A stretch of 64,000 nt of DNA. Origin: Malacoraja senta (Eukaryota). The notes beneath the pieces are model-generated. The model did not search any database. It saw only the letters and a list, made by a program, of their open reading frames with translations, and had not been told where the DNA came from. The stretch spans positions 1 to 64,000 of the forward strand of contig JAXLNO010001977.1 in NCBI GenBank assembly GCA_038087875.1. The letters run 5' to 3'. The position numbers and the translations under genes are program-made. Positions 1,137-50,347 of this stretch are shown here, piece by piece (the stretch's first letter is position 1; each line of letters opens with the position of its first letter).

Positions 1137-1185
1137 CTTGCAGAGTTATTGGATGTTATCGAATTTTCACAAGAATATTCATGAC
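1137..1185 (-). CDS. Gene A stalk exon (GHEYSCENSITSNNSA)
   Basis: Strong acceptor ttttatttccttgttccaacag|, donor AAG|gtaaac. 49 nt, phase 1 to phase 2, compatible with the C2-2 donor upstream and the phase-2 TM exon downstream. Confidence 0.7.
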
Positions 1186-1374
1186 CTGTTGGAACAAGGA
1201 AATAAAAGTCAGTTTCACTGCTTTTCACTTGCAGTTGAACAAAGGAGTATGGTTTTCCGATGTAAGTAGTTGATAGGCTTAACAGACAGGATAATGTTTC
1301 TTCAGTGTGAGTTGATTAAATGGGAGATGTTACGACAAGCAGGCGTGCTGGTAACAACTCTGGCGCCAGATGTA

Positions 1375-1705
1375 GACGGCACAGTGGCGCAGCGGTAGAG
1401 TTGCTGCCTTACAACGCCAGAGACCCGGGTTCGATCCTGACTACGGATGTACGGAATTTTTACCACCTCCCTGTGACCGTGTGGGTTTTCTCCAAGTGCT
1501 CCTGTCCCCCCCTCCCCCCCTCCCCCCTCCCCCCCTCCCCCCCTCCCCCCTCCCCCTCCCCCGCATTACAAAGTAGTGCAAGTTTGCCGGTTCATTGGCT
1601 TTGTAAATGGTCCCCATGGAACTAGTGTACTGGTGAAGACTGGACGGTGTGCACCGAGTGGGTCGAAGAGCCTGTTTCCACGCTGTATCCATAAACTAAT
1701 CTAAA
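1375..1705 (+). mobile_element. tRNA-derived SINE (V-SINE type); copies about 27820-28141 and 61300-61620
   Basis: Box A tggcgcagcgg (1385-1395), box B ggttcgatcc (1428-1437), LINE-like 3' end and taaactaa tail; internal (C6T)n tract. Confidence 0.88.
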
Positions 1706-2472
1706 GGTTGCAATTTGACTTGAGACTTGAGAGAAGTGTTGCTTGGGATGAAACATTGCAGTTATGGGGAGGGGTTCGATAAGGTTTTTATAATATTCCA
1801 TGCAGGACAGGTGAGGAAGGGGAAACCAATTACAGGTGCACAAAAACTCTGAGCTGCATAGACAGTGGATTTTTGGGAAATGTTGCACGATAGATATGTG
1901 TAAATGTGGAGAACACATGGTTAAGTTAAGGAGCAGGATGTTTCAAGGGTATCAAGAAATATTATTAAACCCAGAAGGTGGAGGTACCTGAATTGCTGCA
2001 ATGGACGAGGTGCTGGTAAATGGGATACCGTCGTCAAGGATTTAACTGTGGCCACATTTACTGATAATGTCTGATCCCTTACCATATCTGTGTGTGGATC
2101 ATGTGGTGGGAAAGTGAATGTGCTTGGACTGATGTCACTGCAAACCTAGTTCAAAGCTGTGTAAATGCAAGAGGCAATTCTATACAGGATGCTAGCCTAC
2201 ACCAGCACTACGAATTCTATTTCTGGAGCCCAACAACCAAGTACTGACAAATGAGCCATAATTCCATCATATTAATCTTGATAAATTACTTAAATAACGT
2301 GCAGGGATTTCAGGGTGACGGAGGTTATGAGGAGAAAGCAGGAGAATGGGGTGAAGAAGGGAAGATAGATCAGCCATGATTGAATGGTCTATTTCTGCTT
2401 CTATCACTTGTAATCTGATGACCCCCCCACCCGCACTTCCCCTTCTTCTCCTCATTCCCCCCCACTACTTAC

Positions 2473-2793
2473 CAGTGCCGTTGATTTTCACTAGAAAACT
2501 GCAGGGCACGTCACTGTTGGAGATGGACACGTTGACCATTTCACTGGATTTTGTTCCATTATTATTGGAGGCTGTGCAATAATATTGATGGTGCTGGTGT
2601 TTGAATGATTGACAATGCAGATCCAGGGCATTTTGGTCTGAGATCTTTGAATCCACAGATGGGGTCTTTTCATACCAGCTGTAGCTAATGGGCGGTGATC
2701 CACTGACCGACTCACAGGACACTGTCATTGAGCCCCCGACACAGGAGACATTGGCTGGTGACAGAAATCCAAGCACAGGAACAGACACGGGGT
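2473..2793 (-). pseudogene. Gene A FCRL-like C2 exon C2-2, frame intact but splice acceptor mutated (AG>AT)
   Basis: 321-nt open frame PVSVPVL...SCESVSGSPPISYSW...YYCTASNN, donor ACTG|gtaagt. Acceptor reads tttcccacAT here versus tttcccacAG in genes B and C. Confidence 0.8.
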
Positions 2794-3990: not shown

Positions 3991-4308
3991 CTTCAGATAC
4001 TTGGAGATGTACTTTAAATGTTGGTTCGCCAGGTGTAATAATTCCACATCTGTACCATCCTGTATCTCCAGAGTGAAGATCCTCCACAGTCACAGTAAAT
4101 ATTCCTCGTGCCGGGTTATCTGTGATTGACACTCTTCCGCTCTGTCCTTGTTTCCCATTTGTTTCCACTATATGTGTACACTGGCGACTTGTCCCAGGGC
4201 ACCAGTATTTTGTGTGTGAGCGGTACACTGCTGCATAGTGACAATCGATTGAGATCGCTCTTCCCACAACCCCTCGTACTTCGCTCTCTGCCCACAGTGC
4301 ACCTGAAA
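3991..4308 (-). CDS. Gene A Ig V exon Vd
   Basis: Acceptors ttttccttcag|TTTCAG|GTGCA (4308 or 4302), donor GAAG|gtaggt. VSGALWAESEVRG...IDCHY...KYWCPGTSRQC...DTGWYRC, open frame. Confidence 0.9.
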
Positions 4309-5550: not shown

Positions 5551-5870
5551 CTGCATTGTTCATTTCTGTCACATAACTGCACGTTCCTGCTCCTTTGAAG
5601 ACTTTCACCTTGACTATTTCACTGGATTTTGTCGCACGATTATTTGCGGCTGTGCAGTAATATCGAAGGTGTTCACCTCTGAGGATTTCACAACTCAGAT
5701 CCAGTTGATTGCCTTGCAAGATCGTTGAAACCCAATGCTCGTTCTTCTCAAACCATGTGTAATGATGGGAAGGGATCCACGGAGAGACTCACAGGACACT
5801 GACACAGAGCCTCCAAGACGTGAGGCATTTGCTGCTGACAGATAACTGAGCACAGGAGCAGACATGGGTT
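5551..5870 (-). pseudogene. Gene A FCRL-like C2 exon C2-1, frameshifted
   Basis: Acceptor ttcccacag|AA, donor GCAG|gtgagt, but 320 nt long. One base is missing near 5764 (plus strand gtaatgatggg vs gtaatggatggg in gene B). Repaired reading: EPMSAPVL...SCESLRGSLPIHYTW...YYCTAANN. Confidence 0.8.
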
Positions 5871-8277: not shown

Positions 8278-8592
8278 CGTCAGATACTTGGAGATATACG
8301 TTAAATATTGAATGGTCGGCAGGTGCTGTGATTCCACAGCTGTACCATCCTGTATCTCCAGAGTGAAGATCTTCCACAGTCATAGTAAATATTCTTAGTG
8401 CCGGTATGTCGGTGATTGACACTCTTCCACTCCGTCCGTGTTGCCCATTTGTTTCCACCATATCTGTACATTGGCGACTCTGCCCACGGCACCAGTATTT
8501 AGCCTGTGAGCGGTACTCTGCTGCATAGTGACAATCGATTGTGATGGCTCTTCCCACAACTCCTGTTAAATTCCTCTCTCCCCACACTGCAG
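8278..8592 (-). CDS. Gene A Ig V exon Vc
   Basis: Acceptor ccctttcag|CTGCAG, donor GACG|gtacgt, 315 nt open frame with all V-set and pIgR/CD300 cysteines. Confidence 0.9.
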
Positions 8593-12654: not shown

Positions 12655-12969
12655 CGTCAGATACTTGGAGTTCTACGTTTAACATTGAACGGCCGTTAGA
12701 TGTTGTAATTCCACACCTGTACCATCCTGTATCTCCAGAGTGAAGATCCTCCACAGTCAAAGTAAATATTCCTCGTGCCGAGTTATCTGTGATTGACATT
12801 CTTCCACTCCGTCCGTGTTGCCCATTTGTTTCCACCATATCTGTACATTGGCGATTCTGCACACGGCACCAGTATTTTGTGTGTGAGCGATACTCTGCTT
12901 CATATTGACAATAGATTGTGATCGCTCTTCCCACAACTCCTCTTACATACGTCTCTCCCCACACTGCAG
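12655..12969 (-). CDS. Gene A Ig V exon Vb
   Basis: Acceptor catttcag|CTGCAG, donor GACG|gtacgt, 315 nt open frame: AVWGETYVRG...IYCQY...KYWCRVQNRQC...DTGWYRC. Confidence 0.9.
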
Positions 12970-14200: not shown

Positions 14201-14521
14201 CGTCAGATACTTCGAGTAAAACGTTAAATATTGGATGGTCGGCTGATGTTGTAATTCCACAGCTGTACCATCCTGTATCTTCAGAGTGAAGATCCTCCAC
14301 AGTCACAGTAAATATTCCTCGTGCCGGGTTATCTGTGATTGACACTCTTCCACTCCGTCCGTGTTGCCCATTTGTTTCCACTAAAACTCTACACGGTCGA
14401 CTCCTCCCACGGCACCAGTATTTTGTGTGTGAGCGGTACTCTGCTGCATAGTGACAATCGATTGTGATCTCTCTTCCCACAACTCCTTTTACTTCCCACT
14501 TTGCCCACACTGCACCTGAAA
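14201..14521 (-). CDS. Gene A Ig V exon Va (pIgR/CD300-like V-set)
   Basis: Tandem acceptors ctcag|TTTCAG|GTGCAG (starts 14521 or 14515), donor GACG|gtatgt. IDCHY...KYWCRGRSRPC...DTGWYSC: canonical Cys pair, Trp and the C-C' Cys pair. Open frame, phase 1-1. Confidence 0.92.
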
Positions 14522-15902: not shown

Positions 15903-16039
15903 CGGACCCGTGTTTAGACATTCACCGCCGCCACTGCCTTTACAAAGCCCTGACTGAGGACACAGAGGACGGACGAACTACAATAAAGCGGGTACATTAC
16001 CGGAGAGCGTTACTAACGTGAAAACGCACACCGCCAGAT

Positions 16040-16313
16040 TCGGGGACAGTTCCTTCGCAGTTGTACTCAGACATCGGAATCATCCTACCACAACCAGAGA
16101 GCAGTGCTGAACTATCTACCTCTTTGGAGACCCTCGGACTACCCTTGATCGGACTTCGCTGGCTTTACCTTACACTAAACTTTATTTCCCTTTCATGTAT
16201 CTATGCACTGTAAGAGGATCGATTATAATCATGTATCTGGCTGGTTAGCACGCAAGAAAAAGCTTTTCACTGTACCTCGGTACACGTGACAATAAACTGA
16301 ACTTGCATTTCAG
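16040..16313 (+). repeat. About 270-bp interspersed LINE-like 3' fragment (also about 13940-14168, 48400-48615 and 49520-49790; only its last 40 bp at 9131 and 36011)
   Basis: Recurring block ending cactgtacctcggtacacgtgacaataaact. Confidence 0.5.
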
Positions 16314-16831
16314 CGCGACTGGGTTGCGGATTGGAAAGAGGATGGAGAGAGAGTTGGGGGTAGGTGGATAGAGCGAGGACAGTGGTTCAGTCTCAGACTC
16401 CGGGGGATTGTTGGGTTTGCGACAGAGTTGAGTTGGACAAATGCAGGGACTATTTGAACTGACACAATGAGTCCACAATCCCGACTCCCCCCTCAGTTGT
16501 AAACACATTTTAAAAGTGTAGAATTAACTTCCTGGTGATGCTGCAACCTATGTCCGGTCCAGGTATCTTGGAGTATCTGCTCTAAATTCATTTGCTATTT
16601 TATGCCTATAAACTATCATCAGGATGCAATTAGACCAAGTGTCAACAGTGGTTAAAGTACGAACACAGTCTAGATATTCAAATGTGATTTCAGATCCATC
16701 ACCACAATGCACTGAGTTGCACCTCCCCCATTACATGTCTACACATACTTAACTATCTCTGCTGTGAAAAGGGTGCATGGGACGCCAAATAACATTGATC
16801 ATTGGAATATCAGGATCTGGCTTTCACTCAC

Positions 16832-16868
16832 CCGGCAGCGAGGAGATGAGAAGAATGGGAATCCACAT
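16832..16868 (-). CDS. Gene A leader (signal peptide) exon, MWIPILLISSLP+G
   Basis: ATG at 16868, 12 hydrophobic codons + 1 nt, then donor G|gtgagt. Phase 1 joins the V exon to give MWIPILLISSLPVSGAVWA. Confidence 0.85.
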
Positions 16869-17593
16869 TGTTTTATCCACAGTGACGAGGTCAGTACTTG
16901 TCAGTCTGTCGCTCAGCTCGTAGCTCTCAGATACAACCGCATCTCTCGAATAGCAACGACGAAGAAGGGAACAGGACTTCAGATCGTGAACCACAGCGAG
17001 CCAGCAGCAGCTCGACACGTTACAGTGTGAAAGGATCAGGGTTATATTTAACAAATGGTTGGGTCGGATGATCACAGTCATACGTCACGGAAACAGGCCA
17101 TTCTCCCCAACGCGTTAGACCAATGTGCTCATCTAAGTTAGTCAGATTTTCCCACGTTCAACCCGAAACTCCCCAAACCTTCCCCATACTTGGACCTGTC
17201 CAATGCTCGTTAGATGTTGTTATTGCAGCTGCCTCAACCACTTCGTCAGGTATGATGTATCCGTTAGGATGCAGCGGCGATTATCTCTGTACTCAGAGTC
17301 TGTTAACACTGAACAGTGGTGGGAATAATGATAGACAAAAAAATTCATAAGGAACTCTGCGGGCCAGGCAGCACCTCTGGAGAAAATGGTTAGGTGACGT
17401 TTTGGGTCGGGCCCCTTCATGTAAACAATGATACATTGGATAAAATATGACATGATTTAGAATTGTAGAAACGTCTAAGATGTGTACACTTCCGGATCAT
17501 TCCCTCTTGATGATTTTGTAAGTGGACCGGCAGATCAAAAATATAATAATTGGAACTTTTGTTTTTGCTTATTACTGTTGACAAGGGGCAAAA

Positions 17594-17641
17594 CAGGAAG
17601 CTGGCGTTAGGAAGTAGGGGATTTTCACCTGAAATCAGCTG
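17594..17641. promoter_or_regulatory. Possible enhancer motif cluster about 730 bp upstream of the leader (also 51074-51121)
   Basis: CAGGAAG and AGGAAGT (ETS cores), GGGGATTTTC (kappaB-like, imperfect) and CAGCTG (E-box) within 48 bp. Motif match only. Confidence 0.25.
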
Positions 17642-18429
17642 AGGTTAATTGGAGTTTGACCCTCTCCTCTCTGATTCAACTCTTCAATTCAAATTTGAAA
17701 CACTATTGTCATGGTATTCACGTTTTGAAAATAGAAAATTAACGGTCTGGAGGACTGTGAAGAAGTTTGTCTAGAATTACCACAGGATGGGGATCAGCTG
17801 GGAAAGCGGGATGTGGAATGTAACTGACATGTGTAATGTAACTCAACAAGGGCGAAGTGATACACTTAGTGAAGTTAAAGCAAGGTAGAATATGCACGGT
17901 GAATTGAATTATTAACTTGTCTTCTTTACAATGCAGAGCGAATACATTATCAGAGTTGTGTTCATGTTCATTCCATTGGCTGACTTTGTACATCTGCTTG
18001 CAACGATTTCATTCTGTAGGCAACTAGTTGCATTATAATATAACCTAATATCTGCTGCCGTCTATCGTTCTGGTGTGTCACTTTCAGTGGAACAGTGCCG
18101 TTTATTCGGGTTGTGTAAATCTGTGGCAATGTTGTGTATCACGTGGTATGGGTGTAATACACTGATGAGTCCGCCACTGGTGTTAGCTGAGCGTTGGTGA
18201 TCCTCAGTAAAGGATCTTTTGTTAGGAGCTATTTCCTGTATACTTGCCCACCTAAAACACTGCAGAGAGGAACCGACGATGCAGCAAAACAATTGAATTC
18301 TGTCTACATTCGCCTTTGACCCATGACTACTGCAAACACTTCTCAAAAATTTATTAAGAAGCATCCTGATGCATAATTATTTATTTATCAGCGAAAACAT
18401 TTTTTTCCAGGAAGTTGAATGCATATAAC

Positions 18430-18620
18430 ATATTTTAACAGAGTATAAGACTTTTGAGCAGCAGAAACCACGCAGAGGTTAAAACAATAGTTCGAAGGTG
18501 ATGAAAGAAACCTTGGAAGAGGTGACAAACATTAAGACCAGTGCGGTAAATGAGTTTTGGAAACAGATATGGTTTAGAAAGTTTGGAACATTGCTTTGAA
18601 GTCACTTTCATGAAATCGTT
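18430..18620 (+). mobile_element. Possible Tigger/pogo transposase remnant (also about 51910-52100)
   Basis: Short frame MKETLEEVTNIKTSAVNEFWKQIW resembles the pogo DDE_1 C-terminal W..V...TI...WKKLW block. No TIRs found. Confidence 0.3.
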
Positions 18621-19160
18621 CGTTGAATTGCAAGAGACGTATATTCTGTCCAATTGATATCAGTTGACAAAGCAGGATGATGCATAAATATTTCATCGCG
18701 GTGCAGAATTCACTCATTGATGGTGCAAGCTAGGAGACTTCATTCTAATTCGTGTGTCGAGTGGCGAGGTTCTGATTCATCGCGTCTCTGCAAAAGACAA
18801 TGTGAAGTCATCAGACTCACTGACAGTGGGAACCACGCTTTATTTGACCCGACCACCCCCAACACATGGCTGTCTGGAAGATGGACCCCAACGAATCCAC
18901 ACCGCGCACAGAAATCCACCCAGCACACGTACAACCTGACAAAACCACATGATATCATCTACATAGTGATTTGGTTTAACTTCAGGTTATGAAAACGTGC
19001 ACGATTTTTGTTTCTATCAATGGACAGGATATTTGAAAGCATTAATGAAAACCGTTTGGATACATTCGGCGAAGAGAATTGATTGTTTTGGGCAGAGGGT
19101 GGTGAATCAATGGATTTCATTACCATAGGAGGCTGCGGAGGCCAAATCAATTCACTCCGG

Positions 19161-22100
19161 AGATACATAGCTACATAGATACATAGAAAATATGTGCAGG
19201 AGTAGGCCATTCGGCCCTTCGAGCCTGCACCGCCATTCAATATGATCATGGCTGATCATCCAACTCAGTATCCCGTACCTGCCTTCTCTCCATACCCCCT
19301 GATCCCCTTAACCACAAGGGCCACATCTAACTCCCTCTTAAATATAGCCAATGAACTGGCCTCAACTACCCTCTGTGGCAGAGAGTTCCAGAGATTCACC
19401 ACTCTCTGTGTAAAAAAGTGTTTCCTCATCTCGGTCTTAAAGGATTTCCCCCTTATCCTTAAGCTGTGACCCCTTGTCCTGGACTTCCCCAACATCGGGA
19501 ACAATTTTCCTGCATCTAGCCTGTCCAACCCCATAAGAATTTTGTACGTTTCTATGAGATCCCCTCTCAATCTCCTAAATTCTAGCGAATATAAGCCGTC
19601 TATCCAGTCTTTCTTCATATGAAAGTCCCGACATCCCAGGAATCAGTCTGGTGAACCTTCTCTGCACTCCCTCTATGGCTATAATGTCCTTCCTCAGATT
19701 TGGAGACCAAAACTGTACGCAATACTCCAGGTGTGGTCTCACCAAGACCCTGTACAACTGCAGTAGAACCTCCCTGCTCCTATACTCAAATACTCTTGCT
19801 ATGAAGGCCAACATACCATTCGCTTTCTTCACTGCCTGCTGCACCTGCATGCCTACTTTCAATGACTGGTGTACCATGACACCCAGGTCTCGCTGCATCT
19901 CCCCATTTCCTAATCGGCCACCATTTAGATAATAGTCTGCCTTCCGGTTTTTGCCAACAAAGTGGATAACCTCACATTTATCCACATTATACTGCATCTG
20001 CCAAACATTTGCCCACTCACCCAGCCTATCCAAGTCACCTTGCAGTCTCCTAGCATCCTCCTCACATCTAACACTGCCCCCCAGCTTAGTGTCATCCGCA
20101 AACTTGGAGATGTTGCTTTCAATTCCCTCGTCCAGATCATTAATATAAATTGTAAATAGCTGGGGTCCCAGCACTGAGCCTTGCGGTACCCCACTAGTCA
20201 CTGCCTGCCATTGTGAAAAGGACCCGTTTACTCCTACTCTTTGCTTCCTGTTTGCCAGCCAGTTCTCTATCCACATCAGTACTGAACCCCCAATACCGTG
20301 TGATTTAAGTTTGTATCCTAATCTCTTATGTGGTACCTTGTCGAAAGCCTTCTGAAAGTCCAGATACAACACATCCGCTGGTTCTCCCCTATCCACTCTA
20401 CTAGTTACATCCTCGAAAAATTCTATAAGATTCGTCAGACACGATTTACCTTTCGTAAATCCATGCTGACTTTGTCCAATGATTTCACCACTTTCCAAAT
20501 GTGCTGCTATCCCATCTTTAATAACAGACTCTAGCAGTTTCCCCACTACCGATGTTACACTAAATGGTCTGTAATTCCCCGTTTTCTCTCTCCCTCCCTT
20601 CTTAAAAAGTGGGGTTACGTTTGCTACCCTCCAATACTCAGGAACTACTCCAGAATCTAAAGAGTTTTGAAATATTATCACTAATGCATCCACTATTTCT
20701 GGAGCTACTTCCTTAAGTACTCTGGGATGCAGCCTATCTGGCCCTGGTGATTTATCGGCCTTTAATCCATTCAATTTACCTAACACCACTTCCCGACTAA
20801 CCTGGATTTCACTCAGTTCCTCCATCTCCTTTGACCCGCGGCCCCCTGCTATTTCCGGCAGATTATTTATGTCTTAGTGAAGACGGAACCAAAGTAGTTA
20901 TTCAATTGGTCCGCCATATCCTTGTTCCCCATGATCAATTCATCTGTTTCTGACTGCAAGGGACCTACATTTGTTTTAACTAATCTCTTTCTCTTCACAT
21001 ATCTATAAAAACCTTTGCAGTCAGTTTTTATGTTCCCTGCCAGTTTCCTTTCATAATCTATTTTCCGTTTCCTAATTAAGCCCTTTGTCCTCCTCTGCTG
21101 GTCTCTGAATTTCTCCCAGTCCTCTGGTATGCTGCTTTTTCTGGCTAATTTGTACGCATCATCTTTTGCTTTGATACTATCCCTGATTTCCCTTGTTATC
21201 CACGGATGCACTACCTTCCCTGATTTATTCTTTTGCCAAACTGGGATGAACAATTTTTGTAGTTCATCCATGCAGTCTTTAAATGCCTTCCATTGCATAT
21301 CCACCGTCAACCCTTTTAGAACTAATTGCCAGTCAATCTTGGCCAATTCATGTCTCATACCCTCAAAGTTACCTTTCTTTAAGTTCAGAACCGTTGTTTC
21401 TGAATTAACAATGTCACTCTCCATCCTAATGAAGAACTCAACCATATTATGGTCACTCTTGCCCAAGGGGGCATGCACAACAAGACTGCTAACTAACCCT
21501 TCCTCATTACTCAATACCGAGTCTAGAATAGCCTGCTCTCTCGTTGGTGCCTCTACATGTTGGTTTAGATAACTATCCCGCATACATTCCAAGAAATCCT
21601 CTTCCTCAGCACCCCTGCCAATTTGATTCACCCAATCTATATGTAGATTGAAGTCACCCATTATAACTGTTTTGCCTTTATTGCACGCATTTCTAATTTC
21701 CTGTTTGATGCCATCCCCAACTTCACTACTACTGCTAGGTGGCCTGTACACAACACCCACCAGCCTTTTCTGCCCTCAGTGTTTCGCAGCTCTACCCATA
21801 CCGATTCCACATCCTCCAAGCTAATGTCCTTCCTTTCCACTGCGTTACTCTCCTCTCTAACCAGCAACGCTACCCCACCTCCTTTTCCTTTCTCTCTATC
21901 CCTCCTGAATATTGAATATCCCTGGATGTTCAGCTCCCAGCCTTGGTCACCCTGGAGCCATGTCTCCGTGATCCCAACTATATCATAATCATTAATTGCT
22001 ATCTGCACGTTCAACTCATCCACCTTATTACGAATGCTCCTTGCATTAAGACACAAAGCCTTCAGGCTTGTTTTTACAACGGTCTTACCCCTTATACAAT

Positions 22101-22170
22101 TATGTTGAAAAGTGGCTCTTTTTGATTTTTGCCCTGGATTTGTCTGCCTGCCTCTTTTACTTTTCACCTT
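19161..22170 (-). mobile_element. CR1-clade LINE, nearly complete ORF2 with frameshifts
   Basis: Endonuclease (CLNARSIRNK, GITETWL, GDFN, SDH) and RT (GVPQGSVLGP, KFADD) in four frames; (ATAGATAC)-type tail at the left end. Confidence 0.93.
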
Positions 22171-22431
22171 GCTACCTATTAGCGGGACAGAGATACTGCC
22201 TGTCCCGCTGAGTTCAGTATTTTAGTACATATCCAAATCAATTGATATTTTTAAGCCGGAGATTTTCATATTTCTTATAAATAAGGATGTCAAGGGTTAT
22301 GGGGTGAAGGCAGGAGGATGGATCGGGAGCGAAGGCTAGAATAGTCGTGATTGGGGGCGGATTATATATAATGGGCTGATTGGACCAATTCTGCTCCTAT
22401 AATTTATGAACATGATGCTAATAAAACTTAC

Positions 22432-28897: not shown

Positions 28898-29218
28898 CAG
28901 TGCCGTTGATTTTCACTAGAAAACTGCAGGGCACGTCACTGCTGGAGATGGACACGTTGACCATTTCACTGGATTTTTTTCCATTATTATTGGAGGCTGT
29001 GCAATAATATTGATGGTGCTGGTGTTTGAATGATTGACAATGCAGATCCAGGGCATTTTGGTCTGAGATCTTTGAATCCACAGATGGGGTCTTTTCATAC
29101 CAGCTGTAGCTAATGGGCGGTGATCCGCTGACCGACTCACATGACACTGTCACTGAGCCCCCGAGACAGGAGACATTGGCTGGTGACAGAAATCCAAGCA
29201 CAGGAACAGACACGGGGT
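28898..29218 (-). CDS. Gene B FCRL-like C2 exon C2-2'
   Basis: Acceptor tttcccacag|AC, donor ACTG|gtaagt, 321 nt open frame. PVS-P-L, SCES--GSPPI-Y-W and YYC-A-N motifs typical of FCRL/PECAM-type C2 domains. Confidence 0.88.
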
Positions 29219-30407: not shown

Positions 30408-30725
30408 CTTCAGATACTTGGAGATGTACTTTAAATGTTGGTTCGCCAGGTGTAATAATTCCACATCTGTACCATCCTGTAACTCCAGAGTGAAGATCCT
30501 CCACAGTCACAGTAAATATTCCTCGTGCCGGGTTATCTGTGATTGACACTCTTCCGCTCTGTCCATGTTTCCCATTTGTTTCCACTATATGTGTACATTG
30601 GCGACTTGTCCCAGGGCACCTGCATTTTGTGTGTGAGCGGTACACTGCTGCATAGTGACAATCGATTGAGATCGCTCTTCCCACAAACCCTCGTACTTCG
30701 CTCTCTGCCCACAGTGCACCTGAAA
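30408..30725 (-). CDS. Gene B Ig V exon Vd' (core residues substituted)
   Basis: Frame and splice sites intact, but KYWC>KCRC (C-strand Trp lost) and DTGWYRC>VTGWYRC. Confidence 0.8.
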
Positions 30726-32438: not shown

Positions 32439-32758
32439 CTGCACTGTTCATTTCTGTCACATAACTGCACGTTCCTGCTCCTTTGAAGACTTTCACCTTG
32501 ACTATTTCACTGGATTTTGTCTCACGATTATTTGCGGCTGTGCAGTAATATCGAAGGTGTTCACCTCTGAGGATTTCACAACTCAGATCCAGTTGATTGC
32601 CTTTCAAGATCGTAGAAACCCAATGCTCGTTTTCTCAAACCATGTGTAATGGATGGGAAGGGATCCACGGAGAGACTCACAGGACAATGACACTGAGCCT
32701 CCAAGACGTGAGGAATTTGCTGCTGACAGATAACTGAGCACAGGAGCAGACATGGTTT
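32439..32758 (-). pseudogene. Gene B FCRL-like C2 exon C2-1', frameshifted
   Basis: Intact splice sites but 320 nt. One base is missing near 32631 (plus ctcgttttctc vs ctcgttcttctc in gene A), giving TGA shortly after. Confidence 0.8.
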
Positions 32759-35170: not shown

Positions 35171-35485
35171 CGTCAGATACTTGGAGATGTACGGGAAACA
35201 ATGGATGTTCGGTGGATGCTGTGGTTCCACACCTGTACCATCCTGTATCTCCAGAGTGAAGATCTTCCACAGTCACAGTAAATATTCTTAGTGCCGATAT
35301 ATCTGTGATTGACACTCTTCCACTCCGTCCGTGTTGCCCATTTGTTTCCACCATATCTGTACATTGGCGACTCCACCCACGGCACCAGTATTTTGTGTTT
35401 GAGCGGTAATCTGCTGCATAGTGACAATCGATTGTGATCGCTCTTCCCACAACACCTGTTACATTCCTCTCTCCCCATACTGCAG
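35171..35485 (-). CDS. Gene B Ig V exon Vc'
   Basis: Acceptor catttcag|CTGCAG, donor GACG|gtacgt, 315 nt open frame: IDCHY...KYWCRGWSRQC...DTGWYRC. Confidence 0.9.
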
Positions 35486-39434: not shown

Positions 39435-40430
39435 ATGAAAAGTACATCTCCAGGTCAGAGCCCACAGAGGAAAATCTCAAAACATCTGCTGAAGACTCTG
39501 GAACAGCAAGAAACTTCAGAACTGACCTCTGGAGAGGTCTCTGGAATGGCTACTCGATCTGCAAAAGAGAAAGCCGAAATGGAGGACTTAAGAAACTCGG
39601 TAAGAGATATCAAAAATGATATGGAAGCTGGGAACAGTAAATTGATGGCCGGTAATGATAAAATACTTGAGGGTATTGAGGCTCTCCAAAAAAGAATTGA
39701 AGGTGTGGAAAAAGGATTATCGATAAAAATTGAAAAGGTGGCAGAAGAGACCATAAAGAGGTTTGAGGCTGTGCACGAAACTGTGGCTGCAAATGCATCT
39801 GCAGTGAAAGATTTGGAAGCTGCTGTGGAAGTGATGGCTGGAGAGATGCAGACTATGAAGTCAGAAATAGATAGTCTCAAGAACCAAGTCACAAAGGTTT
39901 CGAATAAATGTGTTGACCTAGAAGCTCGCTCAAGACGTCAAAATATAAGAATACGTGGTGTAAAAGAGGGAGCTGAGGGGGACAATGTTTGTGAGTTCGC
40001 TGCCAACCTAATTAAACACGTACTGAAGCTACCAGAAGTACCTGTAATTGAAGTAGCACATCGACTCCCTAGATTTAAATCAAGATCTCAAGGAGAACGT
40101 GCCTACCCACGACAGATCATAATTAAACTTCGGGATATCTCAACAATGGAAGCGCTGATGAAAAAAATCAACCACGGAGAGAAGATGATGTACAGAGGTG
40201 ATACTATTAAACTCCTACGGGACTACCCTTATGAGATTGAGCAAAAGAGAAGAAAGTTCTCACAGACCAGAGAAGTTCTTTATGGTGTTAAGGGAGTTTT
40301 GTGTGGAGTGTTCTATCCGGCTAGAATGCGTATTACCTTTGAGGGAGTGTCAAAAACATTCACTAATTCGGATGAATCTCTCAAATACGCTCAAGAAATC
40401 GCGACTAAGGCTGCATCAACTGGAGATTGA
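39435..40430 (+). CDS. L1 ORF1p (coiled coil + RRM + CTD, 331 aa)
   Basis: Heptad-rich N-half, then DLEARSRRQNIRIRGVKEG, IEVAHR, PRQII and GVFYPARMRI motifs of L1 ORF1p. Confidence 0.92.
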   Translation: MKSTSPGQSPQRKISKHLLKTLEQQETSELTSGEVSGMATRSAKEKAEMEDLRNSVRDIKNDMEAGNSKLMAGNDKILEGIEALQKRIEGVEKGLSIKIEKVAEETIKRFEAVHETVAANASAVKDLEAAVEVMAGEMQTMKSEIDSLKNQVTKVSNKCVDLEARSRRQNIRIRGVKEGAEGDNVCEFAANLIKHVLKLPEVPVIEVAHRLPRFKSRSQGERAYPRQIIIKLRDISTMEALMKKINHGEKMMYRGDTIKLLRDYPYEIEQKRRKFSQTREVLYGVKGVLCGVFYPARMRITFEGVSKTFTNSDESLKYAQEIATKAASTGD

Positions 40431-41649
40431 AAACCAAGACGACATGAACAAACGAACTTGCTTATTCTCCCAACATGAGTATCACAAGGAAAGTGAATTA
40501 ACTGAACACTGATTTTTTATTTTTTTATTTGACTTCAAGCAACAGATTCTTAGTGAGACGTGGCTAGACATTATTATCTTCGCTGGAACATTGTGCTATG
40601 TAATTCAAGGACACTACGTGCTCAAACGAGGAAAACCTGATAACACGGGACGAACTGCTGGGCTGAGAGTGAAAAACATCACATGGCTTATATTGTTTAT
40701 AAAAAACTGAAAAAACTGAGAACTAATAATAATTAATAATTAACAATACTAATATAGAAATAGCAATTGTAATAGATAAAAAATGTGCAGCCTGCTCTGT
40801 TTAGCAGATAACAGCAAGTGCTATGCAGCTCGAGAGTGGAGGGAGGGGGAGACCGGGTACCTGGCATAACTCCAGGAGCCAGACTCCCGTTAACCCTTCC
40901 AGCGAACAGCTCATTTTTAACAATATTAAAACCAATTTAAAATAGTTAAGAGATAATATACACTCGAGGTTGGTATGAAAAATATATACGGCTTATATAG
41001 TTTTACAAAATGCTGAGAATTAATCATAATTAATAATTAACAATACTAATATAGAAATAATATTTGAAACTGATAAAACTGTGGTGCCTGCGTCATAACG
41101 CAGACAGCAGTTATCACATATGTTCGCAGCTCGTGGAGAGGAGAGGAGATCAGGCACCTGGCACAATTCCAGGAACCTGACTCCGGTTAATCCACTCAGT
41201 AAACCGCTCACTTTAACAATACTAAATTCATTTTAAAATAGTTAAGAGATAAAGAGTGAGTAGGATATGGAATCGAATACATTTGACATATATATAAATT
41301 GTAACTGGGTGAAATAGAACTGAATTGGAAACGGTAATGACCCCATAGATTTTGGGTAATAAATACAGCGGGGCTAACTTTATACCAACTACGCCGGAAG
41401 CGTTATGGATGTCGTACCCCACAGACGAGTGGGCCACTCACTACGGTGTTGAAATTTTAGACACCGTAAATTTATTTGATTTATATACTTTTTTTTTAAT
41501 CACAATATGTCACATCTGTGTGTTTTTTCTTCAAGGACAATCGCGCAGGAGAACTACCAAGGAAGTCTATAATAGAAATACTCCCAAAATAACCAGAGTC
41601 CGGAGGTATGAACGCACCACAATAATTAAGGTCATTAAAACTGGTAAAA

Positions 41650-44600
41650 ATGCATGACGACAATCAAAAGAAAATAGGAGGAATCACATTATGTAGTTGG
41701 AATATAAGGGGGATTAATGAACCTATTAAAAGGGGCAAGATACTAGCTCAGTTGAAATCATACAACACGGACATTGCGTTTCTACAGGAAACACATCTTA
41801 AACAGCAAGATCAGACAAGACTGAGGGCGAACTGGATAGGCCAAACATTTCACTCTTCATTTACCTCCAAATCTAGAGGTACTGCAATTATTATTCGTAA
41901 AGGAATTCCATTTAAATCAAAGAACACTATTTTAGATAAGGAAGGGAGATATCTTATAGTAGCAGGGGAGATCAATAATATGCCAATTACGCTGGTAAAC
42001 ATATATGCGCCCAACTTTGATAACCCTCAATTTTTTAATAAAATTCTGAATATAATTGCAGAATCTAATTATCAAAATGTTATAATCGGAGGAGATTTTA
42101 ATTGTGTTTTAGATCCTTATTTAGATAAATCGATGCAAAAACAAAAAGGTCAGACGAAATCTAAAACCAGTGAACTATTGCACACATATATGGAAAACAC
42201 AAATATAACAGATGTATGGAGGATTGCAAACCCGACGGGAAGGGATTACTCGTTTTATTCAATGGTGCATAAAACATATTCACGGATAGACTATTTTCTT
42301 GTGGATACAAAATTAATTCCGCAATCTTTGAATCCTAAATATCATATTAATGCGATCTCAGATCATTCTCCGTTAACTTTTGTTCTAAAACTAGAAGGAA
42401 TGTCTATGAATAAACCGTTCTGGAGGTTTAACTCACACATTTTAAAAGACCCTCAAGGGAGTATCTATCTAAAAAAACAGATGGATCTATTTTTTGAGTT
42501 AAATGATACACCAGAGATATCCCCCACGTTATTATGGGAATCCTTCAAAGCATTTATAAGAGGAGTCATTATTTCATTTCAAGCTTATCAAAATAAAAAG
42601 AATAAGAATGAACAAAGACACTTAGAAGATCAAATAAAACAGTTAGATATAGATAATGCTAAAGACCCAACTATGGATAAACATAATAAAATACTACTAC
42701 TGAAATTTCAGTTAAATAAATTACTGTCAGAGAAAGTTATAACATTATTTCAAATCACAAAACAAGAACACTTCGAATTCGGGGACAAACCCCACAAACT
42801 TCTAGCACGACAACTTAAAAAACGGGAAAAAGAGAATGCAATATTAAAGATTAAATCAGATAGAGGGGAAGTATTAACACTACCCAAGGATATTAATAAA
42901 AGATTTGCTCAATTTTACCAGAATCTATACACATCTAAAACGTCAATAGACAATAATAAAATCTCAGAATTTTTAGATAATTGTAATCTACCACAATTAG
43001 AACGCAGGGAACAAGAGGAACTGGGAGCACAAATTACTTCTAAGGAGATAGAAGACACAATAAAAACACTAAAAAATGGAAAAACACCAGGACCAGACGG
43101 ATTCAGTAATGAATTTTATAAATCTTTTTATGATATAGTTACTCCACGATTACAAAAAATGTATACATATGCTTATAAAGAGCAAAACCTACCTGAAACA
43201 CTAGCGGAATCAACGATCATATTAATACTTAAAAAAGATAAAAATATAGAAGAACCAGGATCATATAGAGCTATTGCTTTGTTAAATACGGATCAGAAAA
43301 TAATAGCAAAAACATTAGCCAATAGATTAAGCAAGTATGTTAGTAGACTAATACATGAGGATCAAACAGGATTTATACCTAAGAGACACTCATTTAATAA
43401 TTTGAGACGTTTGCTTAACATAATGCATTCACATAAATCTTATGACCAAGAGTTAGCTATCATCTCACTGGACGCAGAAAAAGCGTTTGATCAAGTAGAA
43501 TGGGACTATATGATCAAAGTATTGCAAAAATTCCAATTGGGAGAAAACTTTATTGCATGGATAAAACTACTATATAACAAACCTACGGCTAGAATACTAA
43601 CTAATAATATATTATCTTCAAAATTCGAATTATCTAGGGGCAACAGACAAGGATGTTCACTATCACCGCTGTTATTTGCTTTGGTAATTGAACCCCTTGC
43701 TGAAAAAATAAGAACACACTCGAATATTCACGGTTATAACACAAAATATTCAAACAACAAACTATCCCTATATGCTGATGATGTACTACTGTACATCACA
43801 AAACCACAAATTAGTATACCAAATATATTAAACTTAATTGAGGACTTTGGATCCTTTTCAGGATATAGAATAAATTGGAACAAAAGTGAAATTATGTCGA
43901 TTAAACCAAAAGACTCAACACATCTCAGGAAATTCCCTTTTAAAATAGCTATGGAAAAATTCAAATATTTAGGAATTGAGATCACTAGAAATTACCATGA
44001 TATGTTTAAAGCTAATTATAATCCCCTACTTAAGAAATTAAATAATTTGATTAAATTTTGGAAAACACTTCCGATGTCCTTAATAGGTAGGATAAATGCT
44101 ATAAAAATGATTTTCTTACCACAAATCCTTTACCTATTTCAATCAATACCTATATATCTCCCAAAAAAGTTTTTCAAAAAACTGGACTCAGACATTACAA
44201 ATTTTATATGGGATTACAAATCCCACAGAATACAAAGAACACACCTTAACAAACGAAAAGAGTTGGGGGGTCTAGCGCTCCCTAACTTTATGTATTATAA
44301 CTGGGCAGTAAATATTAAAAATATGATTCACCTGCTGGACAATTCTGCCCAGCAGGTGGACTGGATTATAATGGAAAAAGGGGATTGCTCCCCGAATAAT
44401 ATAGGAGCGATTATTCTCTCTCCAATAAATTTGAATAATAAAAATTATAATAAAAATCCAATTATATATAGCACTATTAGAACATGGAAGCAAATAAAAC
44501 AGAATCTAAAATTAAGAAACCTATCTCTCTTAATACCAATAGTCAATAACCCATCGTTTAAACCTTCAATCATAGATAAAGCATTTATACAATGGGAAAG

Positions 44601-45441
44601 AATGGGAATCAAAACGCTCGAAGATCTGTATGAATTAGAAAAATTACTATCATTCCAACAACTACAACTGAAATATAATTTGAAAAATAATCAATATTTT
44701 AAATATCTACAAATCTGTGACTATTTGAAAACACACACAAAAGATTATTATAATATGCCTTCCGACTTACTAGATGAAGCAATGAAGACAAAGGCGGAAT
44801 CAGTTAATTTAATATCATACTTATATAATATCATCTTAAACATAGAAATACCCACAACAGATGGAATTAGAAGAGATTGGGAACAAGATCTAGGTATAAA
44901 AATTTCAAAAGAGAGTTGGGATAATCATTTATTACAGGTGCATAAATGCTCGATCAACGTACGACATACGCTTATCCAATTTAAAACATTACATAGATTA
45001 TATTATTCAAAAACCAAACTAAATAAAATCTTTCCTAACGTCTCACCAATCTGTGATAAATGTATATGTCAAGAAGCTACCATAGCACATTCTTTTGTTT
45101 TTTGTACAAAAATCCAAAAATTCTGGTTTGAAATATTTGATATTTTTTCAAAATTAATCAAAATAAAACTGGTACCAAAACCAGAATGGATTATTTTTGG
45201 AATATCGGAAGGTATTCCTGAATTAAACGTGTATCAGAAGAATTTACTCAATTATGGGCTAATAATGGGAAAAAAGCTTATACTTAAATTCTGGAAAAAT
45301 GCGCCCACACCAACAATAAAAATGTGGACATCAAATATGTTGGAAACATTACATCTGGAAGAGATGAGATTCCTCCTAGTAGGCAAAGTAGACCAATTTC
45401 AAAAGACGTGGTCTACGTTTTTGGACCTATTACAAGCATGA
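41650..45441 (+). CDS. L1 ORF2p (APE endonuclease + RT + C-terminal Cys/His motif, 1263 aa)
   Basis: WNIRG, LQETH, GGDFN and SDHSP endonuclease motifs; RQGCSLSP and LYADD RT motifs; CDKC...HSFVFC. No stops. Confidence 0.95.
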   Translation: MHDDNQKKIGGITLCSWNIRGINEPIKRGKILAQLKSYNTDIAFLQETHLKQQDQTRLRANWIGQTFHSSFTSKSRGTAIIIRKGIPFKSKNTILDKEGRYLIVAGEINNMPITLVNIYAPNFDNPQFFNKILNIIAESNYQNVIIGGDFNCVLDPYLDKSMQKQKGQTKSKTSELLHTYMENTNITDVWRIANPTGRDYSFYSMVHKTYSRIDYFLVDTKLIPQSLNPKYHINAISDHSPLTFVLKLEGMSMNKPFWRFNSHILKDPQGSIYLKKQMDLFFELNDTPEISPTLLWESFKAFIRGVIISFQAYQNKKNKNEQRHLEDQIKQLDIDNAKDPTMDKHNKILLLKFQLNKLLSEKVITLFQITKQEHFEFGDKPHKLLARQLKKREKENAILKIKSDRGEVLTLPKDINKRFAQFYQNLYTSKTSIDNNKISEFLDNCNLPQLERREQEELGAQITSKEIEDTIKTLKNGKTPGPDGFSNEFYKSFYDIVTPRLQKMYTYAYKEQNLPETLAESTIILILKKDKNIEEPGSYRAIALLNTDQKIIAKTLANRLSKYVSRLIHEDQTGFIPKRHSFNNLRRLLNIMHSHKSYDQELAIISLDAEKAFDQVEWDYMIKVLQKFQLGENFIAWIKLLYNKPTARILTNNILSSKFELSRGNRQGCSLSPLLFALVIEPLAEKIRTHSNIHGYNTKYSNNKLSLYADDVLLYITKPQISIPNILNLIEDFGSFSGYRINWNKSEIMSIKPKDSTHLRKFPFKIAMEKFKYLGIEITRNYHDMFKANYNPLLKKLNNLIKFWKTLPMSLIGRINAIKMIFLPQILYLFQSIPIYLPKKFFKKLDSDITNFIWDYKSHRIQRTHLNKRKELGGLALPNFMYYNWAVNIKNMIHLLDNSAQQVDWIIMEKGDCSPNNIGAIILSPINLNNKNYNKNPIIYSTIRTWKQIKQNLKLRNLSLLIPIVNNPSFKPSIIDKAFIQWERMGIKTLEDLYELEKLLSFQQLQLKYNLKNNQYFKYLQICDYLKTHTKDYYNMPSDLLDEAMKTKAESVNLISYLYNIILNIEIPTTDGIRRDWEQDLGIKISKESWDNHLLQVHKCSINVRHTLIQFKTLHRLYYSKTKLNKIFPNVSPICDKCICQEATIAHSFVFCTKIQKFWFEIFDIFSKLIKIKLVPKPEWIIFGISEGIPELNVYQKNLLNYGLIMGKKLILKFWKNAPTPTIKMWTSNMLETLHLEEMRFLLVGKVDQFQKTWSTFLDLLQA

Positions 45442-46183: not shown

Positions 46184-46461
46184 CGTCAGATACTTGGAGT
46201 ACTACGTTTAACATTGGACGGCCTTTAGATGTTGTAACTCCACACCTGTACCATCCTGTATCTCCAGAGTGAAGTTCCTCCACAGTCAAAGTAAATATTC
46301 CTCGTGCCGGGTTATCTGTGCTTGACATTCTTCCACTCCGTCCGTGTTGCCCATTTGTTTCCACCATATCTGTACATTGGCGATTCTGCACACGGCACCA
46401 GTATTTTGTGTGTGAGCGGTTCCCACAACTCCACTTACATACGTCTCTCCCCACACTGCGG
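46184..46461 (-). pseudogene. Gene B V exon Vb', pseudo-exon
   Basis: 278 nt instead of 315: a net 37-nt deletion removes the B-strand Cys and shifts the frame. Donor changed GT>GC (GACG|gcacgt). Confidence 0.88.
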
Positions 46462-48648
46462 CTGAAATGGAGGGGAGAAACTTTCAGATGGAGAACAAAT
46501 GAACTGTTTAATGGAAATAGATACATTTTGAAGAAAACATGCAAGAAAACTTAAATCGTTCCATGATGTGTCATATTGCTTCACGGCCAATGTCTCCGGT
46601 GTGAAGTGCAGGCAGTGCTGTAATTGTACCTGTTGTGTCAGTGTTCTGTCCCCTGGTCAGTACAATTAGGGTTCACTTCCTACTCCAGATCCCTGAGCAG
46701 AAACTGGGCTGGGATCGCAGTGCGGTACTGAGGGAGCGCGGCAGTGTTGCAGGAGCTGCCTTTCAACAATCCCAGGCGGTGCCCGGCCTCTCACCCTGCA
46801 GAAATACCTCACTTTGCTATTTCATTGGCGGTGCCGCCGGCTACGCTGCCAACATTCATCTCTCAACCGACACTGGGCCGGACCCGTGTTTAGGCATTCA
46901 CCGCCGCCACTGCTTTTACATAGCCCTGACTGAGAACAGAGGACGGACGGATTATAATAAAGCGGGTAAAGAAATAAGAGACAATAGGTGTAGGAGTAGG
47001 CCATTCGGCCCTTCGAGCCAGCACCGACATTCACTATGATCATGGCTGATCATCCACAATCAGTACCCCGTTCCTACCTTCTCACCATATCCCATAGCGC
47101 CGCTATCTTTTAGAGCTCCATCTAACTCTCTCGCTCTGACGTTTCGGGTCGAGACCCATGCTCAGACCAGAAACGTTACCCATTCCTTCTCTCCAGGGAT
47201 GCAGCCTGTCTCGCTGAGTTAATCCAGCATTTTTTTGTCAATCTTTAATTGTCTTTTATTTCCTTATCTCAACAGAACATAAATCTATTCGTGAGTCGTT
47301 AACATCAGTAGGGTTCACTTCAAATACAAATGTAACACCCGATAACAATCATCAGGAAACCACTGCGCCCAGTTACTCTAACGGGTATAGTGTTCTCTTG
47401 CTCAATTTTTGATTGGTCTTGCTTTTCAATATGAGAGGTGGAGACACAAGGAACTGTAGATACATACATAGATAAATAGATACATAGATACATAGGCAAT
47501 AGGTGCAGGAGTAGGCCATTCAGCCCTTCGAGCCAGCACCGCCATTCAATGTGTTCATGGCTGATCATCCACAATCAGTACCCCGTTCCTGCCTTTCCCC
47601 ATACCCCTTGATTCCGCTAGCCCAAAGCGCTCTATCTAACTCTCTTTTGAAAGCATCCAGTGAATCGGCCTCCACTGCCTTCTGAGGCAGATAATTCCAC
47701 AGATTCACAACTCTCTGGGTGAAAACGTTTTTCCTCATGTCCGTTGTAAATTGCCTATCCATTATTCTTAATATCGGGAAAATGTTTCCTGCCTCTCGCG
47801 TGTCCAATCCCTTAATAATCTTATATTTTTCAATAAGATCCCATCTCATCCTTCTAAATTCCAGAGTATACAAGCGCAGCCGCACCATTCAATCAACACA
47901 TGACAGTCCCGCCATCCCGGGAATTAACCTTGTTGCACTCCCTCAACATACACTGCACTCCCTCGATAGCAAGAAGGTCCTTCCTCAAATTTGGAGATCA
48001 AAACTGGAAACAATAATCCAGGTGTGGTCTCACTGGGGCCATGTACAACTGCAGAAGGACCTCTTTGCTCCTGTACTCAACTCCTCTTGTTATTAAGGTC
48101 AACATGCCACTAGCTTTCTTCACTGCCTGCTGTACCTGCATGCTTACTTTCAGTGAGTGGTGAACAAGGACCCCCAGATCTCTTTGTACTTCCCCTTTTC
48201 CCAACCTGACAACATTCAGATAATAATCTGCCTTCCTGATTTTGCTACTAAAGTGGATAAACTCACATTTATCCACATTAAACTTCATCTGCCATGCATC
48301 TGCCCACTCACCCAACCACTCACCCACTCACCGCTCGCCCACTCACCACCCACCTCCAGGTCCCTTACCGGAGAGCGTTACTAGCGTGAACACGCACACC
48401 GCCAGATTCGGGGACAATTACTTCACAGCTCTTGTCAGGCATCTGAATCATCCTACCACATCCAGAGAGCAGTGCAGAACTATCTATCTCTTTGATGACC
48501 CTCGGACTACCCTTGATCGGACTTTGCTGGATTCGCCTTACACTAAACGTAATTTCCTTTTCATGTATCTATGCACTGTAAGAGGATCGATTGTAATCCT
48601 GTATTGTCTTTCTGCTGGAGACGTCAAGTCATTCGCTGCGAAACATAC

Positions 48649-48969
48649 CGTCAGATACTTCGAGTAAAACGTTAAATATTGGATGGTCGGCTGATGTTGT
48701 AATTCCACAGCTGTACCATCCTGTATCTTCAGAGTGAAGATCCTCCACAGTCACAGTAAATATTCCTCGTGCCAGGTTATCTGTGATTGACACTCTTCCA
48801 CTCCGTCCGTGTTGCCCATTTGTTTCCACTAAAACTCTACACGGTCGACTCCTCCCACGGCACCAGTATTTTGTGTGTGAGCGGTACTCTGCTGCATAGT
48901 GACAATCGATTGTGATCTCTCTTCCCACAACTCCTTTTACTTCCCACTTTGCCCACACTGCACCTGAAA
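48649..48969 (-). CDS. Gene B Ig V exon Va'
   Basis: Intact splice sites and frame. One substitution seen versus gene A Va (NPARG>NLARG). Confidence 0.92.
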
Positions 48970-50310
48970 CTGAGCGGAGAAACTTTCAGATGGAGAGCAA
49001 ATTAACTGTTTAATGGTAATTGATACATTTTGAAGATTACATGAAAGAAAACGTAAAACGTTCCATAATGTGTCATATTGCTTCACGACCAATGTCTCCG
49101 GTCTGAAGTGCAGACAGTGCTGTTATTGTACCAGTTGTGTCAATGTTCTGTCCGCGGGTCAGTGCAATTTGGGTTCACTTCCCACTCCAGATCCCTGAGC
49201 AGAAACTGGGCTGGGATCGCAGTGCGGTTCTGAGGGAGCGCGTCAGTTTTGCGGGAGATGCCTTCCAACAATCCCAGGCGGTGCCCGGCCTCTCACCCTA
49301 AAGAAAGACCCCACTTTGCTATTTAATTGGCGGTGCCGCCGGCTGCGCTGCCAACATTCAACTCTCAACCGACACTGGGCCGGACCCGTGTTTAGACATT
49401 CACCGCCGCCACTGCATTTACAAAGCCCTGACTGAGGACACAGAGGACGGACGAGTTACAATAAAGCGGGTCCATTACCGGAGAGCGTTACTAGCGTGAA
49501 AACGCACACCGCCAGATTCGGGGACAGTTCCTTCGCAGTTGTACTCAGACATCGGAATCATCCTACCACAACCAGAGAGCAGTGCTGAACTATCTACCTC
49601 TTTGGTGACCCTCGGACTACCCTTGATCGGACTTCGCTGGCTTTACCTTACACTAAACTTTATTTCCCTTTCATGTATCTATGCACTGTAAGAGGATCGA
49701 TTATAATCATGTATCTGACTGGTTAGCACGCAACAAAAAGCTTTTCACTGTACCTCGGTACACGTGACAATAAACTGAACTTGCATTTCAGCGCGACTGT
49801 GTTGCGGATTGGAAAGAGGATGGAGAGAGAGTTGGGGGTAGGTGGATAGAGCGAGGACAGTGGTTCAGTCTCAGACTCCGGGGAATTGTTGGGTTTGCGA
49901 CAGAGTTGAGTTGGACAAATGCAGGGAATATTTGAACTGACACAATGAGTCCACAATCCCGACTCCCCCCTCAGTTGTAAACACATTTTAAAAGTGTAGA
50001 ATCAACTTCCTGGTGATGCTGCAACCTCTGTCCTTCGGTCCAGGTATCTTGGAGTATCGTCCCCAAATTCATTTGCTATTTTATGCCTATAAACTATCAT
50101 CAGGATGCAATTAGACCGTGTCAACAGTGGTTAAAGTACGAACACAGTCTAGATATTCAAATGTAATTTCAGATCCATCACCACAATGCACTGAGTTGCA
50201 CCTCCCCCATTACATGTCTACACATACTTAACTACCTCTGCTTTGAAAAGGGTGCATGGGACCCCAAATAACATTGATCATTGGAATATCAGGATCTGGC
50301 TTTCACTCAC

Positions 50311-50347
50311 CCGGCAGCGAGGAGATGAGAAGAATGGGAATCCACAT
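50311..50347 (-). CDS. Gene B leader (signal peptide) exon
   Basis: Same 37 nt as the gene A leader, donor G|gtgagt. Confidence 0.85.

Follow-up and report, generated by a model that had tools for sequence, protein, structure and literature searches.

The 64,000 nucleotides of Malacoraja senta DNA analysed here (contig JAXLNO010001977.1, positions 1 to 64,000; the window) very probably hold part of a tandem array of skate genes for modular domain immune-type receptors (MDIR), all of the MDIR5 type, with units that are likely decaying paralogues of receptors that would couple to adaptors. The sequence is eukaryotic, rich in transposable elements and contains no N. Self-comparison divides it into three head-to-tail units, A, B and C, with the receptor genes on the minus strand, and a six-frame scan using hidden Markov models (HMMs) derived from exons of the window itself located 16 immunoglobulin (Ig)-like segments, all of them on this strand. 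The plan of a unit comprises ten exons: leader, V1, V2, V3, C2a, V4, C2b, stalk, transmembrane (TM) and cytoplasmic tail. The units and their exons are as follows, with exon boundaries marked by a slash and lengths given in nucleotides (nt).

1-26460, minus strand: unit A, delimited by self-comparison
16832-16868, minus strand: unit A leader exon, MWIPILLISSLP, donor G/GTGAGT, phase 1, identical to the leader of MDIR5 and MDIR3
14201-14521, minus strand: unit A V1 exon, N-terminal-type V, intact, 93% identical to the Amblyraja P0165 domain
12655-12969, minus strand: unit A V2 exon, intact
8278-8592, minus strand: unit A V3 exon, intact
5551-5870, minus strand: unit A C2a exon, 320 nt, frameshifted by a 1-nt deletion near 5764/5765
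3991-4308, minus strand: unit A V4 exon, membrane-proximal-type V, intact
2473-2793, minus strand: unit A C2b exon, open frame, acceptor at 2795-2794 is AT, not AG
1137-1185, minus strand: unit A stalk exon, HEYSCENSITSNNSA, exits in phase 2; the TM and tail exons of unit A lie off the window
26461-59940, minus strand: unit B, delimited by self-comparison
50311-50347, minus strand: unit B leader exon
48649-48969, minus strand: unit B V1 exon, intact
46184-46461, minus strand: unit B V2 pseudo-exon, 37-nt deletion, first Cys lost, frame shifted, donor GT changed to GC
35171-35485, minus strand: unit B V3 exon, intact, diverging by 8.6% from that of unit A
32439-32758, minus strand: unit B C2a exon, frameshifted by loss of 1 nt at 32631, not the position hit in unit A
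30408-30725, minus strand: unit B V4 exon, open frame, with Y to C, W to R (the invariant Trp) and D to V (the Asp of DxGxYxC)
28898-29218, minus strand: unit B C2b exon, intact
27582-27630, minus strand: unit B stalk exon
22432-22522, minus strand: unit B TM exon, YISWKVGRWLFFLLLAIWSISTAVFTRSSK, Arg near the outer end
18740-18787, minus strand: unit B cytoplasmic tail exon, RRDESEPRHSTHELE followed by a stop; polyadenylation signals at 18385, 18355 and 18106
From 59941, minus strand: unit C, delimited by self-comparison; its 5' exons, leader to C2a, lie off the window
63887-64000, minus strand: unit C V4 exon, 3' part, D to V in common with unit B
62377-62697, minus strand: unit C C2b exon, intact
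61062-61110, minus strand: unit C stalk exon
55912-56002, minus strand: unit C TM exon, identical to unit B TM
52220-52267, minus strand: unit C tail exon, stop codon included; the unit B leader lies 1.9 kb downstream

The splice phases are uniform. The leader exon ends in phase 1 and each Ig exon begins and ends in phase 1; the stalk exon, 49 nt long, exits in phase 2, and the TM exon enters in phase 2, where one base completes a serine codon, and exits in phase 0. The exons contain the motifs KYWC-x6-C, DTGWYxCG, CES..GS.PI.Y.W and YYC.A.N. In V1 and V4, an acceptor located 6 nt upstream of the obvious TTTCAG yields VSGAVW, as in the MDIR cDNAs, and is most likely the one used, judging from cDNA-derived relatives; V2 and V3 have no upstream AG, leaving the downstream acceptor as the sole option. 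From an intact unit, a type I membrane protein some 707-715 residues long would be expected. The original prediction, made from the letters of this DNA and a list of its open reading frames, had given each unit a leader, four V, two C2, a stalk and a TM exon on one strand and in compatible phases, and both the scan and the splice sites bear this out. The exons it listed are exact; the short tail exon had escaped it, and not all the exons are intact. Position 1137, where it let the cluster begin, is the end of the unit A stalk exon, and the TM exon inside its range (22522-22432) belongs to unit B, not to unit A.

The V exons were assigned by Pfam to V-set, with E values of 1e-11 to 1e-14, and C2b to Ig_3/Ig_2, with an E value of 1e-7. 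Compared with solved structures, V1 matched all five pIgR domains (D1 with 56 bits) and CD300f/CLM-1 (75 bits), with TREM2, NKp44 and FcmuR ranking after these as structural relatives. For C2b, FCRL5 was far ahead, with 155 bits over six stretches. A HMMER search with C2b, which covered 1.84 billion representatives, retrieved as relatives outside the family mammalian FCRL5 and fish proteins named 'CD22-like', 'sialoadhesin-like' and 'CEACAM5-like', at 26-35% identity. The assignment of the V domains to the pIgR/CD300 type and of the C2 domains to the FCRL type, put forward in the original prediction, is thereby upheld. Pfam gave no match for the 71-residue piece of C2a that follows the frameshift, a piece that our own C2 HMM assigns clearly. 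Matches of C2b to TAL effectors in the PDB search were rejected as spurious, being devoid of any significant stretch and all falling on query residues 53-96.

Among named relatives, three UniProt entries from Rostroraja eglanteria come closest, namely P0260, P0168 and P0186 ('Modular domain immune-type receptor 2, 3 and 5', respectively). MDIR5 (P0186), derived from cDNA, is composed of leader, V, C2, V, C2, stalk, TM and short tail. Its leader is identical to that of the window (MWIPILLISSLP), while C2b is 88-90%, V4 82-84% and the TM segment 90% identical, including VGRW. The last 16 residues of MDIR5 allowed the tail exon to be located in the window, and stalk and tail are colinear. Both tails are of the same short KRDESEPRHS.HEL type, without tyrosine, and the order V-C2a-V4-C2b-stalk-TM-tail is common to MDIR5 and the window units; the two differ in that MDIR5 has a single N-terminal V and four domains, against three N-terminal V exons and six Ig exons, several of these exons damaged, in the window units. 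MDIR3 (P0168), likewise known from cDNA, has the order V-V-C2-V-C2 and is 87-90% identical to the window in V4 and 84-86% in C2b. Together with RefSeq relatives from Amblyraja radiata and Leucoraja erinacea (P0165, P0167, P0170 and P0158, labelled 'pIgR-like'), it shares the V-V-C2a-V4-C2b ectodomain found in the window: V1 and V2 of the window are 93% and 85% identical to domains of P0165, and V4 is 90-93% identical to that of P0170, P0158 and MDIR3. These proteins differ in having an uncharged TM segment and a tail of about 100 residues with motifs (ITYAVV, VVYADV and SIYASV) resembling the immunoreceptor tyrosine-based inhibitory motif (ITIM). Residues 550-701 of MDIR3, used as a query, match nothing in the window; it contains no such ITIM-tail exon, and an ITIM-tailed partner gene inside it was rejected. 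The proteins nearest overall are models from Amblyraja radiata and Leucoraja erinacea, at 90-93% identity per domain.

Phylogeny agrees with these identities. The original prediction had proposed examining the V and C2 domains separately with HMMs and trees, and maximum-likelihood trees of the separated domains place those of the window in four groups: N-terminal V, V4, C2a and C2b. The last three each form a clade with the corresponding domains of MDIR2, MDIR3 and MDIR5, the support for V4, C2a and C2b with the matching MDIR3/MDIR5 domains being 100/99, 100/100 and 100/100, respectively; V1 to V3 group with N-terminal V domains. HMMER relatives that are 58-84% identical to C2b, parsed with our own V and C2 HMMs, alternate V and C2 domains in the orders V-C2, V-C2-V-C2 and V-V-C2-V-C2, with up to twelve domains. 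Their hosts are skates, rays, sawfish, many sharks and the chimaera Callorhinchus, and dozens of them are in RefSeq, so that the chondrichthyan multigene family anticipated in the original prediction is real. A type I membrane protein from a large multigene family, whose variants have a charged TM segment, an ITIM-bearing tail or no motif, is characteristic of the MDIR, and the window units agree with this in their leader, arginine-containing TM exon, short tail and tandem arrangement, with ITIM-tailed paralogues occurring in relatives. The exact order V-V-V-C2-V-C2 is absent from the 273 relatives retrieved, the nearest being V-V-C2-V-C2 and V-V-V-C2.

The genes also carry lesions. In unit A, the missing base splits C2a between two frames, and the acceptor of C2b reads CACAT/AC in place of CACAG/AC. 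In unit B, the 37 nt gone from V2 include the first Cys codon and leave the exon out of frame with a GC donor, C2a is one base short, and V4 has three changes in its core, the D to V change occurring in unit C as well. As assembled, neither of the complete units, A and B, can encode a six-domain protein, and the six-domain product expected in the original prediction is thus not to be had from them. At best, they would yield shorter isoforms by skipping the damaged phase 1-1 exons. Comparison of A with B over the intact exons counts 32 non-synonymous and 8 synonymous changes, a ratio of non-synonymous to synonymous differences (pN/pS) of about 1.2, which fits relaxed constraint or diversifying selection. 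We infer that units A and B are decaying paralogues, a reading we hold to be rather better than even.

The two V3 exons (8278-8592 and 35171-35485, both on the minus strand) are set apart from their surroundings: their 8.6% difference, made up of 22 non-synonymous and 5 synonymous changes, compares with about 4% in the flanking introns. This divergence could come from gene conversion with another V exon or from diversifying selection.

The strongest alternative, to which we give a real but clearly smaller chance, is that the genes are functional, producing receptors of four to six Ig domains, and that the lesions are assembly or allelic artefacts or are bypassed, either by exon skipping or by a cryptic in-phase acceptor in unit A C2b. 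As all Ig exons are phase 1-1, the frame survives skipping, and high conservation without damage is seen in the leader, V1, V3, C2b (in units B and C), stalk, TM and tail exons. Against functional genes stand five independent lesions of different kinds: two 1-nt deletions, the 37-nt deletion and the acceptor and donor substitutions. The two C2a frameshifts, moreover, are independent events in one exon, as expected under relaxed constraint. Two sequencing runs from the same species, X1 and X2, bear on the lesions as genomic DNA, to judge by a depth that stays level across introns and by the lack of exon joints. An independent short-read contig of X2, which spans C2a without a gap, also has the unit B deletion; the base absent at 32631 is present in an RNA contig of a relative.

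Several points weigh against decaying, adaptor-coupled paralogues as the reading of this locus. The private V4 substitutions of unit B and its C2b K were unseen in X1 and X2, all the contigs compared there carrying unit-A-like letters, a finding that also favours functional genes; some of the lesions may thus be allele-specific or errors of the assembly. A pN/pS near 1 fits diversifying selection too, which is common in immune receptor families. The splicing of the V, C2 and TM exons to one another is deduced from the MDIR cDNAs and the RefSeq models and not from this locus, and adaptor pairing is drawn solely from the conserved TM arginine. Finally, the abstract of the 2006 description of the MDIR reportedly lists MDIR5 as being without characteristic signalling motifs.

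The evidence from RNA comes from runs of related species. Outside repeats, only the predicted C2b, V4 and C2a exons are covered, at low depth. One contig spans 28900-29214, almost exactly the C2b exon, and in a stranded run the first mates lie on the plus strand, as expected for a minus-strand gene. Exon-exon joints were not present among the matches listed.

The TM segment and tail are the parts most informative about signalling. The Arg-Trp of VGRW (in KVGRWLFFLLL) is kept in all the short-tailed relatives retrieved (59 of 59), from skates to sharks. The tail consists of 15 residues, RRDESEPRHSTHELE, and K+RRDESEPRHSTHELE, forming the about 20 residues past the TM segment, contains no tyrosine. 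As in adaptor-coupled receptors, a basic residue in the TM segment is combined with a short tail free of signalling motifs. Because of the conserved TM arginine and the tyrosine-free tail, the receptors are predicted to be probably adaptor-coupled. They would signal via a non-covalently bound adaptor, similar to FcR-gamma or DAP12, that carries an ITAM (immunoreceptor tyrosine-based activation motif), and the window genes may be the activating counterpart of the ITIM-tailed genes of the MDIR2/MDIR3 type. Paired arrangements of activating and ITIM-containing receptors are known for CD300, KIR, LILR and related families. By analogy, lipids (as for CD300) or Ig (as for pIgR and FCRL) might serve as ligands.

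Units A and B share about 96% of their sequence. Across a block of 14.6 kb (15903-30521 aligned with 49381-64000), which covers unit B versus unit C as well as the regions upstream of A and of B, identity reaches 99.6%, with about 58 differences. Unit B is 7 kb longer than unit A, chiefly through the insertion of a long interspersed nuclear element (LINE) in its V2-V3 intron, and the start codon of the next unit lies only about 1.9 kb downstream of the stop of the preceding one. The units are the product of recent segmental duplication, and the three N-terminal V exons that of intragenic duplication. It is improbable that units B and C and the 99.6% blocks arose as an assembly duplication (an uncollapsed haplotype or a mis-joined repeat), with fewer units in reality. 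The 99.6% identity over 14.6 kb, including identical LINE insertions, would be expected from such an error, and same-species DNA contigs differ by about 1% from the window, often being unit-A-like where unit B is private. Against it, the differences within the block, the consistent head-to-tail order and the proper gene spacing speak for genuine copies; given that A and B are about 4% apart and differ by the 7-kb LINE insertion, no fewer than two of the units are real. Copy number is beyond what the word depths of Logan contigs can give.

The LINE in the V2-V3 intron of unit B (39435-45441, plus strand) is absent from unit A and apparently full-length. It has a 331-residue ORF1-like frame without a Pfam match and an unbroken ORF2 of 1263 residues with endonuclease and reverse transcriptase domains, and may be a young, active element. 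Two LINE fragments lie on the minus strand, at 19575-22167 (reverse transcriptase) in the TM-tail intron and at 23953-26238 (endonuclease and reverse transcriptase with zf-RVT) in the stalk-TM intron. Near-identical copies at 53055-55647 and 57433-59718 were carried along by the segmental duplication. A G-rich simple repeat, (GGGGGAG)n, occupies 1500-1570 and 27930-28000 (minus strand) in the C2b-stalk intron; it sits in an element resembling a short interspersed nuclear element, with a tRNA-like segment, and has enormous read depth in every run.

Because the array is a tight head-to-tail one, the Ig exons are uniformly phase 1-1 and the 5' untranslated region (5'UTR) is open in frame with the leader, cassette and read-through splicing between neighbouring units is possible, if doubtful. 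The C2b or TM exon of one unit would be joined to the leader of the next, giving combinatorial receptors for which damaged units serve as exon donors. If this were true, MDIR arrays would yield receptors with a variable number of V and C2 modules. The 5'UTR upstream of the leader ATG (16869-17000, minus strand) stays open over a span exceeding 40 codons, and its translation is conserved with Amblyraja. An internal 5'UTR and leader, preceded by C2b or TM of an upstream copy, is held by 19 of the 273 retrieved models (P0165, P0167, P0157 and P0192 among them). Such models, in which tandem units are read through or fused, may reflect genuine chimeric transcripts or be artefacts of Gnomon.

The original prediction had implied that the combination of the two domain types was new. 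A previously unrecognised hybrid family, joining pIgR/CD300 V domains to FCRL C2 domains and acting as an Ig-binding receptor system, a role that is purely conjectural, is very improbable: the V and C2 similarities are correctly assigned and the layout is hidden by annotation names, but name and cDNAs exist already, since MDIR2, MDIR3 and MDIR5 are in UniProt and V and C2 domains joined to a TM segment are known as cDNA. Cannon et al. 2006 (Immunogenetics 58:362) are said to have described the MDIR family of clearnose skate, and the abstract reportedly distinguishes four subfamilies of Ig domains, with ectodomains numbering from one to six. The hybrid design has been a published hallmark of the MDIR since 2006; the claim of novelty therefore fails. 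An earlier description of the six-domain form, which the original prediction had itself named as counting against it, exists in substance, the verified case being the five-domain V-V-C2-V-C2 cDNA of MDIR3. PMC3031540 cites Cannon et al. 2006 on the MDIR family.

Compared with better-known receptors, the units stand apart in their layout. The CD300/CMRF35-like proteins and pIgR of mammals share the V type with the window units, including the second disulfide, WC-x6-C. CD300, which also occurs as paired charged-TM and ITIM forms, has one V domain, followed by a stalk and TM segment, and no C2 domain, against four V exons and two C2 exons in each unit. Typical of pIgR are an ectodomain of 2-5 domains, all of the V type, and a long cytoplasmic tail with signals for basolateral sorting, endocytosis and transcytosis, whereas the units interleave two FCRL-like Ig_2/Ig_3 C2 exons. 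On the C2 side, where fish 'CD22-like' or LITR-like proteins are also among the closest known systems, FCRL5 provides the best solved structure for the window C2, and mammalian FCRL5 is the best named relative outside the family, at about 30-34% identity, but the FCRL proteins, like the classical FcR, have ectodomains of C2/I-type domains alone, are without V domains of the CD300/pIgR type and have tails with ITIM or ITAM-like motifs, whereas the units have four V-set exons. The window genes thus lack the defining features of pIgR, CD300 and FCRL proper. Least probable of all is a skate orthologue of pIgR, the polymeric Ig transcytosis receptor, which, despite the best summed PDB score of the V exons being that of pIgR and the 'pIgR-like' names of its relatives in RefSeq, was rejected because of its architecture and its tail: a pair of FCRL-type C2 domains is interspersed with the V domains, a 15-residue tail is too short for sorting or transcytosis signals, the TM arginine is typical of adaptor-coupled receptors, there are many tandem copies and ITIM-tailed paralogues, and per domain CD300f scores above pIgR D1 (75 versus 56 bits).

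For annotation, the RefSeq names of the relatives ('polymeric immunoglobulin receptor-like', 'Fc receptor-like protein 5' or 'uncharacterized') show how far labels conceal this layout, as the original prediction had foreseen; the labels 'pIgR-like' and 'FCRL5' cover these genes, and some models fuse neighbouring copies. A RefSeq protein of Rhinoraja longicauda (P0004, 760 residues), named 'E3 ubiquitin-protein ligase TRIM69-like', has TRIM RING/B-box Pfam domains joined to MDIR C2-V-C2 domains and an MDIR5-type TM segment, and is probably a fusion of neighbouring genes made by the annotation pipeline.

The window opens no new question about the MDIR. What it adds to the family is detail at the level of the locus, namely the ten-exon layout with its intragenic triplication of the V exon. 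The class with a TM arginine and short tail is conserved across a family borne by sharks, rays and chimaera, and in this skate its locus displays very young tandem duplication (96-99.6% identity) with probable fast decay of the copies.

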